Shown here: positions 19,401 through 24,949 of the stretch, one piece after another | Layout of the letters: the number at the start of each line of letters is the position of its first letter | How positions within the stretch are numbered: the stretch's first letter is position 1 | Assembly: GCA_047495785.1 (NCBI GenBank) | Contig: JBLDXI010000042.1 | Location: 4,340,001-4,404,000, forward strand | Direction of reading: 5' to 3' | Length of the DNA: 64,000 bases | Source: Lepidodermella squamata | Taxonomy: Eukaryota; Animalia; Gastrotricha | Translations under genes and position numbers: made by a program | The notes under the pieces: generated by a model | Seen by the model: the letters and a program-made list of their open reading frames with translations, nothing else | Databases searched by the model: none | What the model was told of the DNA's origin: nothing

Positions 19401-20164
19401 GGTCCTCCTTTTACCGGAACCAAATTTTGGCATTTTCTAGTGACCTGAAATCACTTTTCGGAAATTTTTGCGGGTCAAGATTGACCAAAATTATTGAAAA
19501 AATTATTTGGCGTAACATTTTCTATAAGACAGAGTTTTCACATCAGAACTCATACTTCGCCTACAATTCGTATAATAATTAAAAAAATGACTCTTTGCCT
19601 ATTTCGACTTTAAATCCGCGAAATTCAAATCTGGCTCCGCTAAAAAATATTCTGATTCTATAATAAATACTTCTTCAATTTAATTGTGATAAATCCTCGA
19701 ATGTTCCGTGGTTTCTGAGTAATTTTCACTATTTCTTCGGGAATTTTAGCCCGGTATTTAATTGAATTCGCTTTTTATTTCAGGCTTTCACCCGCAATTT
19801 GTTTGGCCCGGTCGCTCGCCGTGTTGGCTGGGAGCCGAAGAGCACCGACGCCCCGAACGACGCCCTTCTCCGCGCCCTCGTCCTGTCGAAGATGGGCTAC
19901 GCCGGAGACGCAGCCACGATTGCCGAGGCTCGCCGTCGTTTCGACGAACAGGTCGCCAAGAAAACGCCTCTGCCCGCAGATCTGCGCGCCACCGTCTACG
20001 GCATCGTCGCCAAGTACGGCGGTGAGGACACCTACCAGCAAATGTACCAGATGTACAAGGAGACCGATTTGAACGAGGAGAAGGTTCGCCTGTTGCGCGG
20101 CATGGGTCAACACGACGATGTTGCGCTCAAGCGCAAATTCTTGGAATTCTCGCTCTCCGAAGAG
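16499..20164 (+). CDS. NPEPPS: Puromycin-sensitive aminopeptidase, shared exons 1-3 (797 codons), completed by one of three alternative terminal modules
   Basis: Exons 16499-17356, 18046-19197, 19784-20164, all phase 0. Motifs [64 protein letters not shown]. Confidence 0.93.
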
Positions 20165-20536
20165 GTAAGACATGCAAATTATTCTGCATTGGCAAAATCT
20201 CCATTAAAAGGTTCAAATATTCTTAACCGAGTTTGATAAGCCTTTTCGTTATCTCAAAAATTGAAATTGTTGCGCTGCGATATGGTCTGCTACCGTTTGA
20301 TAATTTTTGATAAGGTGTTGATAAGTTTTGATATTACTATATTTGATCGGCTCTTAGGTAACGAATAGCGGCGATATTTACAAAATCGTTCTTTTTTATA
20401 CAAAATGTTCGAAAAATCAAATTAAAATTGAATTTTTTTATTGACTCTAATAGCAAAATTCTCCAACTTTTATAAGAAAATAGTTCTTAGCGGTTTTAGC
20501 ATTGTATGATAATTGATTGAAATGACTTGAAATAAG

Positions 20537-20863
20537 GTGCGTAGCCAAGATGCTCACATTGCCATGGGCGCGACGACGGACACGCGCGAGGGCCGTGAGC
20601 TCGACTGGGAGTTCACGAAACGCCACTGGGCCGAGTTGAAGGAGCGCTATCAGGACGGCTACGTGTTCACGCGAATGTTGACGCATTTGGCGGACGGCTT
20701 TTTCTGCGAGCAAGTGGCGCGCGACATCGAGGCGCACTTCACGGCGCACCCGGTCGGCAGCGCCACGCGCGCCATGCACCAGTCCGTCGAGCACATTCGC
20801 GTTCAAGTTGCTTGGCTTGCGCGCGAATCGCCACAGCTAGACCGCTTTTTTGCGCAAGCTTAA
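20537..20863 (+). CDS. NPEPPS: NPEPPS alternative terminal exon A (108 aa, VRSQDAH...FFAQA)
   Basis: Phase-0 AG at 20535-20536 (purine-rich, weak acceptor). Begins with VRSQD, which continues LSEE as in PSA proteins. AATAAA near 21006 and 21095. Confidence 0.8.
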   Translation: MRSQDAHIAMGATTDTREGRELDWEFTKRHWAELKERYQDGYVFTRMLTHLADGFFCEQVARDIEAHFTAHPVGSATRAMHQSVEHIRVQVAWLARESPQLDRFFAQA

Positions 20864-21338
20864 TAACATATCGCATGATCAGAAATGATATCGACCTCGA
20901 TCAATCACGCTTTCTCGATTTTTTTAGCCTGTCTCTATTTTGAATGTATTTCTTGAAGGATAGCTCAATTATTGGCTATTTTAGAACGATTAAAAAATTC
21001 TAACAAATAAAATTATTGATTGAATTAATTTGCTATTTTGCTATGATAAAAGTGAAATTTTGAGAATATTTATTTTAATTTTAATTTCATTATAAATAAA
21101 CGATTTTAGCCCTTTTTCACAGATTTTTCAAATTTTACATTATTTTTGAAATATTCTTTTCCATTTATTTGGTATTTGAGATAGTGGCAAAACAGCCGTT
21201 TATTCTTGATTTTTTTATTGGTTCTCGAATGGGAAAAAATGATCGATTGTGACATTTTTCTGCTTGAAATTTTTTTTCGAAATTTATCACCGCTGAATTC
21301 TGAGTGGATTCTGATTGCCATTGTTTGTGCCTATGCAG

Positions 21339-21671
21339 GTTCGCTCGCAGGACACTCACATTTGCATTTCGGCGGTCACGGGCACGCCCGACGGCCGGCG
21401 CATCGTCTGGGAGTTCCTGAAGGCCAACTACCCCGAGTTCGTCAAGCGCTACAAGGACGGCTTCTTGTTCGGCCGCATTTTCGAACAGGCGGCGGGCGGT
21501 TTCTACACGACGGAGGAGGCGAAAGAGGTCGAGACGTTCTTCGCCGCCAACCCGGTCGGTTCGGCGACCCGTGTCGCGGCCCAGACCGTCGAGGGCATCA
21601 ACCTGCATTCGGCCTGGTTGGGTCGCGAGAAGGCTGGCCTCGAGAAGTTCTTCACCGCCGCGAAATACTGA
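21339..21671 (+). CDS. NPEPPS: NPEPPS alternative terminal exon B (110 aa, VRSQDTH...FTAAKY)
   Basis: Phase-0 tgcag acceptor ending at 21338; intact GC-rich ORF alignable to exon A over its whole length. Confidence 0.88.
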   Translation, partial: VRSQDTHICISAVTGTPDGRRIVWEFLKANYPEFVKRYKDGFLFGRIFEQAAGGFYTTEEAKEVETFFAANPVGSATRVAAQTVEGINLHSAWLGREKAGLEKFFTAAKY

Positions 21672-21996
21672 ATCCAATTCAGTTTTACAGCCAATTTATG
21701 ATCGTTTATTCCTGCTGGTGTAATTTTCAAAGAAAATTCCAAAAAGACGCACAAGAAACAGTGATATGATTGATTGGTTTATGCGTGAATTCCGACGCGG
21801 TGATTAAATGTAAAGAAACAAGCAAAGCTAGATTTTTAAGCTCGATATACCTATATATAAATGTATCTGTTGAAGAGTAAATATTGCATGGTTTAGTTGC
21901 TTTGAAAAATCAACTGTCTTTTAATGCGTCCAAGTATTACGAAAGGGAAAATTTTTAAAAGCGTAAAATCAATATTTATTTTTGAAAAATTCACAG

Positions 21997-22540
21997 GTCA
22001 AATCATGCGACGCTCACAATTGCCTGAATGCTGTTACTACGACTCCAGAAGGTTCGTTTAACTAAAAGAATTTGATGTATTTGAAAAATCCTCCTTAAAA
22101 AAATTCATCTTGAAATTTCTCACAATTTTTTATTCCTCATTTTTGCGCATTATTTATTATTTTATTATTTTTGATAGCAAATCAATATAGTTTGTCATAT
22201 AAATTGCCAATTAATTGAAATTAATGAAATTATGTTAGAAATTATAATTTCTAAATTTTAAGGTCGCGCTTTGTGCTGGGAATTCGCCAAGAAGAACTGG
22301 GGTCTGCTGCGCGAGCGCTACGAGGCCACTCTGTTCTTGTTCGGCCGCATTGTTTCCTTCGTCGCGGACACCCTGCATGAGGAGACGTACGCCGATGATT
22401 TGGAGACGTTCTTCGCCGCCAACTACGTTGCCTCGGCGAAGCGTGTAGCTGCACAGACTGTCGAGAAAATCCGCGTGCAGTCGCGCTGGGTGAAACGCGA
22501 AGCTCCCCTCCTTGACGAGTACTTCAAGAAATCGAACTGA
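21997..22540 (+). CDS. NPEPPS: NPEPPS alternative terminal module C, split in two exons (110 aa, VKSCDAH...FKKSN)
   Basis: Exons 21997-22051 (VKSCDAHNCLNAVTTTPEG) and 22263-22540, joined by a phase-1 GT-AG intron. AATAAA near 22670. Confidence 0.82.
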
Positions 22541-24949
22541 GCAAATCGATGGGCCGCTGCAAAAAATACTGTTATTGAATATGAATTCAACTGACTTCAA
22601 ATTGATCAATTATACAATGTGATTTCTTAAATGTGATTAAAGTCATGTCCGGGAAATTAAAAGGACAAAAATAAAGTTATTGCAAATGTTCGAAAAGATT
22701 CCCTATAAAATTGAGAGAATTCGAGCTGATGAATCTCATAAATAATCGGAAAAATCGGAAAAATCTGATATTATGAGGTTATGACAGTATGAGATTGGGG
22801 CCAGATCCTTCCTCTTAAACTTTGAATTTAGCGGCACAAAATTTGACCGGAAACCGGAAGCGCAACCTCTAACTGTGATCAGCCGAAAAGCCCAAAAATT
22901 GAATGCCAAAGCCCTAAGAAATCTGAAACAATCGATCATCAATCAGCTATGGAATATAAAATTGGCGAGATTTTATTGCTAATGCCATATTATCATTCGC
23001 CGAAAGCTTAATCCGACAAAATTATACTTACACGTTTGTGTATTCGGCAGAAAATATTCAATTGTCACGGACATTTACAGCCTCGCTGTCAACATTCACG
23101 CGTCCACCTGCTGTCAGCATAGCCACCGAATTAGTCTCCATTCAGAAGGCATGTCGTAGCAGACCCTGGGGAATTTAATCTTCAATAATTTAAGGTTCTT
23201 GTTATTTTGGCAAACGAGTCTTGTCAGCGCTCCAATCTGTCTTCATCGATTCATAGCTGATTCATTCACATTTTTTTCTGTTTCAATCCCCTTGCTGTTT
23301 AGTACATTCGCCTGGTTTCTGTTGCCCGAATTTCTGGCAAACCTTTGAATTTACCATACGAGACGCAAAGCAAGAAAAAAGGCACCAATTATTAGGGCTA
23401 ATGAAATTCCAATGTTAATAAACTGATTCGCAATTTCAGATTGGACGTGCTTATCAGCAATTCAATCGTGACGGACTTGACCAGGCGGGCCAGTTGGACT
23501 TTGATTTCATTAGCACCTGATAATAAAAAAATGTTAATTAAATGCGTAATTAATTCAAGAGTGGATCTTTTTCCGTGTAACTCCAGTATCCGGCATGCAG
23601 CTGAGTCCAGAATCTTCCAGTAAATTCGCTGATTCTATAATGGTCTGTTGGCTGAGTACTATTACTCATATACAGCTCCATAAAAAATACAGTGAGCGGC
23701 TATTGCATCATTTTTTGCGAGTATTAATACAAACGCGGCATGAATCATCACGCACGATGAATCATCGTGACACAGCAGTGTAGCCTATACTATGCGCTAT
23801 GCGAAGTATACACGTGGCATTTCTAGGCTTACCGATCCTTGCATCAGATCATTTATTTTTACCATTTTTGTTGAGCACAGCTGAGAGATTCTGCTCAACT
23901 ATTTCGGCCATCAGCAGAAGTAAGATTCCTTTTATTGTTTGCTATCAGGAAAGGTCTATTGAAGACCTTTTCGTTACCAGGAAAATTAAAAATATTCTGA
24001 TATTGAATTCTCAATTTCTAAAAAGCCCATCCTAAACTGCGACAAATTAATTAAACGCAGCGAAATTTTAGCTCAGATAAAACGTGTGCAATTTAATGCC
24101 GAACCAAATTTGAAGGTGCTCGTTTGCTCCAGGCTCCAGTTTGGCTTTATACTGGAATTAATTGAGTGATAACTTTTAGAAGGTGCGGCAAAATGTGTTA
24201 GTTTCAGTGTTGATTGTGTAGGGCCTCCTTCTCACTTCGGCTAGCTGATCTAGCTATTTTTTCTTGAGAAATGATTAAATACTTATGACATTTTTTTCGT
24301 TCGGCTCTAATCTTCCAACTCATTTAAAATGTGACCCAGTTTTTATAAATAAAAAATTCGATATTATTAGTCTTTTTCAGAAAAGGTTCCCAAAAATACC
24401 CTCCATAAAAATTTGGTCTGAATCATATGATCGATTCAGGTTTGAAGATCGATTTTCAGAAAGCTACACAATTTTCATTACATCCTGTTACTTTTTTCAA
24501 AAAACTGATATCTTTATATAAATGAAGTGTTTTTTAATTCTCGAGGCTTTGGGGCGTGGGTAACATTCATCCTGCAAAATGTCGGTATAGCCCGGGAATA
24601 ATTTTCCACGTGAGATGAATCATCATTTCACCGAAACGCCATGATGAATAGTGGCCAGTTGGAAGTTGAATCATCTTGCATTATTTTTATCCCTTACTGA
24701 CAGACCACATCACGATGAATCATAGCATGCAAGTACTTCTCTCTGAGGGAAGTTTTTATTTATTAACTAGTTTTTATTCTTAATTATTAACAAGTTCCGC
24801 AATATTTCAAACTAGAATTTTTTTATAGATGCAATCTTTTATTATGAAATTTCAATCTCTCATACATATTTTTGTCTGACAAAATCACTTTTCCTACAAT
24901 GTGCAAGGGCCCTAAAATCGAGCTTATAGCAAAACCCCCAAACTCGACG

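Follow-up and report, generated by a model that had tools for sequence, protein, structure and literature searches.

The window analysed here, 64,000 nucleotides of Lepidodermella squamata DNA that form part of contig C42 of a 121-Mb eukaryotic assembly, carries from 16499 to 22696 an intron-containing gene for an M1 aminopeptidase of the PSA/NPEPPS type. At the 3′ end of this gene, a single donor site is followed by three homologous terminal modules, called A, B and C below. Coordinates are those of the window unless another contig is named, and all features given for the window lie on the + strand.

The constant part of the protein is encoded by three exons. Exon 1 (16499-17356), delimited as an open reading frame, holds the start codon, a possible presequence and the Peptidase_M1_N domain (Pfam PF17900, E 6e-57). 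Exon 2 (18046-19197) encodes the catalytic domain (Pfam PF01433, E 6e-82), with the GAMEN, HExxH and WLNEG motifs, and the start of ERAP1_C. Exon 3 (19784-20164), placed by Pfam and RNA joints, encodes the middle of domain IV (ERAP1_C positions 107-227). Together the three exons cover ERAP1_C positions 1-227 and add up to exactly 797 codons, so that the donor after 20164 (..LSEE then GTAAGA), common to all three tails, is in phase 0. In the spliced core, GAMEN is found at residue 309, HExxH at 345 and WLNEG at 365, and both the GxMEN exopeptidase motif and the HExxH-x18-E zinc site are present. The Pfam domain order Peptidase_M1_N, Peptidase_M1, ERAP1_C runs across exons 1-3 and into every module. 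The best PDB match of the modules is human PSA (E 9e-24), with APN and ERAP1/2 far behind. The core itself is 50-54% identical to the nearest named PSA proteins, and the top named matches of a related protein, encoded by metagenome contig L008, are all annotated as puromycin-sensitive aminopeptidase (52-54% identity). Judged by its domains, motifs and closest named relatives, the gene is thus an M1 zinc aminopeptidase of the PSA/NPEPPS subfamily. Its exons are GC-rich and its introns AT-rich, the surrounding introns having 19-31% GC.

Module A (20537-20863; ERAP1_C E 2.6e-14) is an alternative last exon of 108 codons and a stop. Its acceptor is weak (..GAAATAAG then G): it reads AAG and has no pyrimidine tract (..TTGAAATAAG then G). 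The 3′ UTR that follows (20864-21011) contains poly(A) signals at 20989 (ATTAAA) and 21006 (AATAAA), and a further hexamer lies at 21095. Module B (21339-21671; ERAP1_C E 1.7e-18), the canonical last exon, has 110 codons and a stop, and its 3′ UTR (21672-21895) carries an ATTAAA at 21803; RNA contigs from two runs described below end at 21832 (X1) and 21895 (X3). Module C is split. Part 1 (21997-22051), supported by RNA joints and by a homolog on metagenome contig L011, is a 55-nt exon that begins with VKSCD and ends at a phase-1 donor, GTTCGT. Part 2 (22263-22540; ERAP1_C E 6e-10) comprises 278 nt including the stop, after an acceptor AG at 22261-22262. The module is in frame only once the two parts are joined, and then has 110 codons. 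In its 3′ UTR (22541-22696), hexamers are found at 22636, 22656 and 22670, the last one an AATAAA, and poly(A) is added after 22696.

The modules are homologous, of similar length (108, 110 and 110 codons) and all entered in phase 0, and their pairwise identity is 45-48% at the amino acid level. Each matches ERAP1_C at positions of about 230-317 out of 318, directly after the segment encoded by exon 3; on the strength of these profile matches, the resemblance of all three to ERAP1_C is not a chance one. Splicing to A, B or C gives proteins of 905, 907 and 907 aa. An earlier, sequence-only reading of this DNA had proposed the same module coordinates and the same isoform lengths, with a stop and an AATAAA or ATTAAA for each module. 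The coordinates held when frames and splice sites were inspected again, the lengths were reproduced from the spliced products, and stops and hexamers are present 3′ of A, B and C.

Only three public runs (X1, X2 and X3) were found to contain DNA of the window. X1 and X3 are assemblies that come from separate studies of different years, with no library type recorded for either; they are cDNA-like in behaviour, since they are essentially without depth over introns (17444-18034, 19217-19413, 20202-20398 and 20990-21186) and carry GT..AG joints. Intron 1 is removed in both (joint 17356->18046, GT..AG) and intron 2 in X3 (19197->19784). The joint from exon 3 to module B, 20164->21339, has a depth of 730 in X1 and 67 in X3; the two joints required for module C, 20164->21997 and 22051->22263, are found in X1 (250) and in X3 (38.5). 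A joint to module A was recovered as well and is discussed below. Both RNA-like runs contain the module A exon and its 3′ UTR, with 81% and 70% of the sampled words present, an X1 contig covers the module from 20670 to 20923, and RNA depth drops to about 6 past 20990. No joint between one module and another was found among the RNA joints of X1 and X3. One upstream donor is joined in RNA to three terminal exons, as expected of alternative last exons. All four junctions that the sequence-only reading had predicted (20164 to 20537, 21339 and 21997, and 22051 to 22263) occur in these intron-free assemblies.

Transcript ends were also looked at. For module C, a loose end of 20 A follows position 22696 in X3, about 20 nt past the AATAAA at 22670. 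A poly(A) tail was seen for C only; for A and B, what supports an end is the fall of RNA coverage. Both RNA-like runs order the modules alike, B > C > A, by contig depth, which is no strict ranking of isoforms.

We conclude that this is most likely a single PSA-type gene whose last coding exon has been tandemly duplicated, giving three alternative last exons, and we put the probability of this reading at roughly 0.8. The earlier proposal of one gene with three homologous last exons is thus borne out by joints, stops and signals. An artefact of assembly or annotation, be it three collapsed genes or C-terminal fragments with promoters of their own, is extremely improbable; nothing speaks for it beyond the general possibility, which had been raised at the outset. 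Against it, the contigs of the third run, X2, a DNA run that covers introns, match the window without differences at 19765-20341 and, across A, B and the first part of C, at 20670-22060. The second stretch is unbroken, and the modules are therefore truly adjacent in the genome. In addition, a search of the whole genome recovered just these modules and one further close PSA copy, on contig C32, and the RNA joints tie the single exon 3 donor to each module. Collapsed or separate genes were rejected on the DNA contigs and the whole-genome search together.

Next, the history of the tails was examined in paralogs and relatives. The C32 copy (about 1614112-1617005 on that contig) is 81% identical to the window gene in the body of the protein, has introns of 55-65 bp, and has one tail only, of the B type. 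In the RNA contigs, the loose ends at 21437 and 21598 match that tail, which indicates that the C32 copy is transcribed too. It evolves faster, with an end branch of 0.21 versus 0.03 for the window copy. A search for an A- or C-type module at this paralog or downstream of it returned noise-level tblastn matches only. Metagenome contig L008 carries two tandem PSA genes, each with one B-type tail, and a search for A or C relics downstream of the L008 gene likewise gave noise-level tblastn matches.

A different arrangement was found on L011, whose gene is identical to the window gene at 74.6% of amino acids in exon 2 and 71% in exon 3. There, exon 3 leads into a B-type exon that has a stop and an AATAAA, and a split C-type module comes next. 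The first part of this module is a 55-nt exon (12188-12242) that starts with VKTCD and ends at a phase-1 donor GTAAGT, the same split and phase as in module C. The intron behind it closes with AG, and the second part of the module (12297-12560) is 47% identical to part 2 of module C and ends in its own stop. The signature motifs of the C type, VK[ST]CD, CW.FAK.NW and QTVEKIR.Q, are retained. Module B, 71% identical to the C32 tail and 70% to its B-type counterpart on L011, is the canonical tail, the one also present in the C32 paralog and on both metagenome contigs.

In the module tree, the tails of this animal group all fall into a single clade (100/99). Module C pairs with the C-type module of L011 (96/85), and the B-type tails have short branches. 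Module A, on a branch of 0.96, groups with the C types and with the tail of an intronless paralog located upstream in the window (90/98), a grouping of long branches that calls for caution; A, C and this upstream paralog share IRVQ where the B types carry I(N/R)(L/M)H. When the tree is built from the enzyme body, C42 and C32 emerge as sister copies (100/98) that lie outside L011 and L008. The B+C arrangement is therefore older than the species split, which implies that C was later lost in the C32 copy and in the L008 gene. C is an old second tail kept by selection. No A-type module was found in L011, L008 or the C32 paralog, and A is either an old module that was lost elsewhere or a later, fast-evolved copy, perhaps made from a C-type exon. 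In the search of related genomes that the earlier reading had called for, B+C is kept in L011, A was encountered nowhere else, and L008 is without C.

The databases contain very few relatives. A profile search of 5.8 billion proteins returned 5 matches, two metagenome scans yielded none closer than 38%, and a representative search with the C-type profile found no C-type module besides that of L011 itself. One more contig, L012, is 1.4 kb long and has one module with uninformative flanks.

These data bear on whether the three tails might be functionally redundant, tolerated leftovers of duplication among which the choice is stochastic. Such redundancy appears doubtful to us. It would agree with the core structural residues being common to all modules, and with C having been lost twice while the gene was kept. 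Yet module C and its L011 counterpart group together, and not with the neighbouring B exons, across a deep split, and the C-type signature motifs are conserved. This grouping argues against redundancy, and against gene conversion as well.

Constraint on the modules was then estimated from composition and from allelic differences. GC content at third codon positions (GC3) is 0.77 for A, 0.87 for B and 0.70 for C, compared to 0.73-0.82 for the core exons, and in the case of A this value is found inside an intron of 29% GC. A dead exon would be expected to drift toward the composition of introns. A second haplotype, visible as bubbles between 17107 and 22653 in all three runs, differs from the window at 28 coding positions. 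The change is synonymous at all 21 sites in the core exons, at the single site in B, at the single site in C, and at 3 of the 5 sites in A. Module A looks less constrained than the rest of the gene, on small numbers. The presence of the second haplotype in DNA and RNA-like runs of different years and labels is an observation in its own right, and suggests that the stock is stably heterozygous, possibly clonal.

Several points weigh against the reading of one gene with three alternative last exons. All the RNA evidence consists of contigs assembled from two runs, and isoforms cannot be ranked by their depths. The contigs that carry the joints extend just 26-54 nt on their shorter side, which is what is expected at a point where alternative junctions split an assembly graph. 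The joint to module A, 20164->20537, is represented by one contig, in X3, at a depth of 10.7. The B+C arrangement was found in one relative only, L011, and since both the C32 paralog and L008 have lost C, this tail is dispensable in some contexts. Finally, dN/dS among the modules, which the earlier reading had suggested as a test, came out at 0.38-0.67, unreliable values that were not used as evidence because dS was saturated or negative in most pairs and biased by the shared high GC3.

Some of these points concern module A specifically, and lead to the alternative that the gene has two functional tails, B and C, with A a young or decaying copy whose splicing does not exceed noise and yields no useful protein. 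The A joint is found in one run, at the lowest X3 depth of the three (10.7 versus 67 and 38.5); its acceptor is without a pyrimidine tract; non-synonymous allelic differences make up 2 of 5 in A and 0 of 23 elsewhere in the gene; and no A-type module occurs in L011, L008 or C32, A itself lying on a long branch (0.96). We nevertheless consider this alternative unlikely. Module A is open for 108 codons, with a match to ERAP1_C stronger than that of part 2 of module C, and none of the 15 residues invariant among the five module sequences of alignment A1 has been lost from it. Its GC3 of 0.77 has been kept despite about 54% amino acid divergence from B, where neutral decay would have erased it, and its exon and UTR are present in both RNA-like runs. 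We therefore keep to three alternative last exons, among which the modules are unequal: B is canonical and dominant, C ancient, and A locus-specific, weakly used and less constrained.

A mechanism for the choice can be proposed from this anatomy and from what is known of alternative last exons. Transcription passes A, then B, then C. One donor, the phase-0 site after 20164, is shown to be spliced to three acceptors, each module has a stop, and a poly(A) end is proven for C; an mRNA would end at the poly(A) site of whichever module is chosen. Isoform choice would then be set by acceptor use in competition with cleavage and polyadenylation at the upstream modules, the outcome depending on whether the poly(A) sites of A or B are cleaved before the polymerase and the spliceosome reach the next module. 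B is the tail most used and A a weakly spliced third one; the AAG acceptor of A, devoid of a pyrimidine tract, fits its low use. Pairing of a docking site with selector sequences, as in Dscam, was considered and rejected, the inverted and direct repeats between 20165 and 22300 being only short and AT-rich (14-27 nt, 70-89%).

To see what the swap changes in the protein, the modules were aligned with human PSA. They match end to end the last 107 residues or so of the protein, residues 787-893 of the 8sw0 chain, which correspond to UniProt 804-910 (the offset was checked by Phe846, which falls on the F of GGFLISRL). The assignment of the modules to the end of domain IV, made earlier without such an alignment, is right according to both Pfam and PSA. 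The isoforms thus share domains I-III and most of domain IV, and differ in their last 108 aa or so. In the PSA structure, the active site is walled in part by helices 28, 31 and 33. The beginning of alpha31, at Phe846 (the counterpart of Arg721 in factor F3), is able to contact the catalytic domain, while alpha33, the long final helix, closes the superhelix and locks it as a loop (PMC10343166). The swapped segment certainly includes alpha31 and alpha33; alpha28 may belong to it as well, by an estimate from helix spacing. At the position equivalent to Phe846, B carries F, A carries Y, and C carries L beside a one-residue insertion. The constant part contains the putative microtubule-binding motif (682-703). 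The isoforms are likely to differ in chamber lining, in open/closed behaviour, or in the outer surface offered to partners.

The C32 copy and L008, that is, copies or lineages with extra PSA paralogs, have lost the C tail. We tentatively propose that the tails are a domain IV swap that would alter peptide length or sequence preference, or partners, and that, in this animal lineage, exon duplication and whole-gene duplication are interchangeable routes to the same diversification, a scheme that we hold to be possible without regarding it as the probable one.

Homologous alternative ends are known in other genes. Vertebrate GNAO1 has alternative pairs of final exons (7.1-8.1 and 7.2-8.2) that arose by local duplication of terminal exons (PMC5896119). 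As in the present gene, its C-termini are homologous and mutually exclusive on one shared body, and the swap occurs at a functional interface; the GNAO1 arrangement is conserved across a large clade (PMC5896119). GNAO1, however, is a signalling GTPase with two versions, whereas the PSA gene encodes a peptidase with three; in addition, the modules here are mostly single exons (C being split) with their own poly(A) signals, and A is lineage-specific. A more general class is that of alternatively spliced homologous exons born by tandem duplication, described as old, conserved and expressed (PMC4465641); the modules resemble this class by their common phase, nearly equal length and alternative use. 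Most described cases of that class are internal, mutually exclusive exons, whereas those of the PSA gene are terminal, so that the choice is coupled to polyadenylation.

Among M1 aminopeptidases, human PSA (NPEPPS; PDB 8sw0/8sw1 and 9o5k) shares the four-domain architecture and the motifs; unlike the gene described here, it has no alternative homologous C-terminal modules reported in the papers found and, to our knowledge, has a single C-terminal end. Human ERAP1 exists as isoforms a and b, encoded by two mRNA forms that differ at the extreme C-terminus, but the difference there is confined to a few terminal residues, and the ends are not structural modules homologous to each other. A literature search for alternative homologous tails in PSA or any M1 aminopeptidase found no report, which is consistent with the sequence-only reading having known of none for NPEPPS. 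The mechanism of terminal-exon duplication is known in other genes; what appears to be new is its occurrence in a PSA/M1 enzyme, which has good support from RNA and partial support from conservation.

The control by domain IV of substrate length, closing and partners is an active question for ERAP1, ERAP2, IRAP and PSA, and is usually probed by mutagenesis or chimeras. Here, three natural versions of the last six helices or so are set on one identical catalytic body, and one of these versions has stayed a type of its own through a deep species split. Isoforms studied side by side would cleanly test the contribution of the end of domain IV. The gene also illustrates clearly how duplication of a terminal exon can take the place of gene duplication.

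Some further observations were made on related genes and on the surroundings. PSA genes are arranged as head-to-tail tandem pairs, 100-250 bp apart, on L011 (12811-13311) and L008 (3-1009), which shows that tandem duplication of the whole PSA gene has occurred repeatedly in this group. Directly upstream of the window gene, at 13753-16392, lies the intronless paralog mentioned above, a diverged M1 aminopeptidase of 879 aa that is 32-38% identical to its neighbour and has a GC3 of just 0.46. The tail of this paralog sits on a very long branch and is nearer to the C and A types than to B (37% identity to C), and one may speculate that the gene is an old retrocopy of a C- or A-type mRNA. In an unrelated predicted protein, P0127 (201 aa), two nearly identical ERAP1_C ends stand in tandem, one residue apart; either the same terminal segment was duplicated very recently in another organism, or the assembly is at fault.

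Within intron 2 of the window gene, between 19400 and 19610, X2 depth rises to about 2950, compared to about 65 elsewhere, with many loose ends and odd joints, and slight depth is seen there in the RNA runs too. This suggests a high-copy repeat or a fragment of a mobile element. Further upstream, an intronless open reading frame of 644 aa (11380-13314) probably encodes, from its translation, an acyl-CoA oxidase. Long intronless genes seem to be common both here and on L011, where a helicase/Tudor open reading frame of 1460 aa was found.

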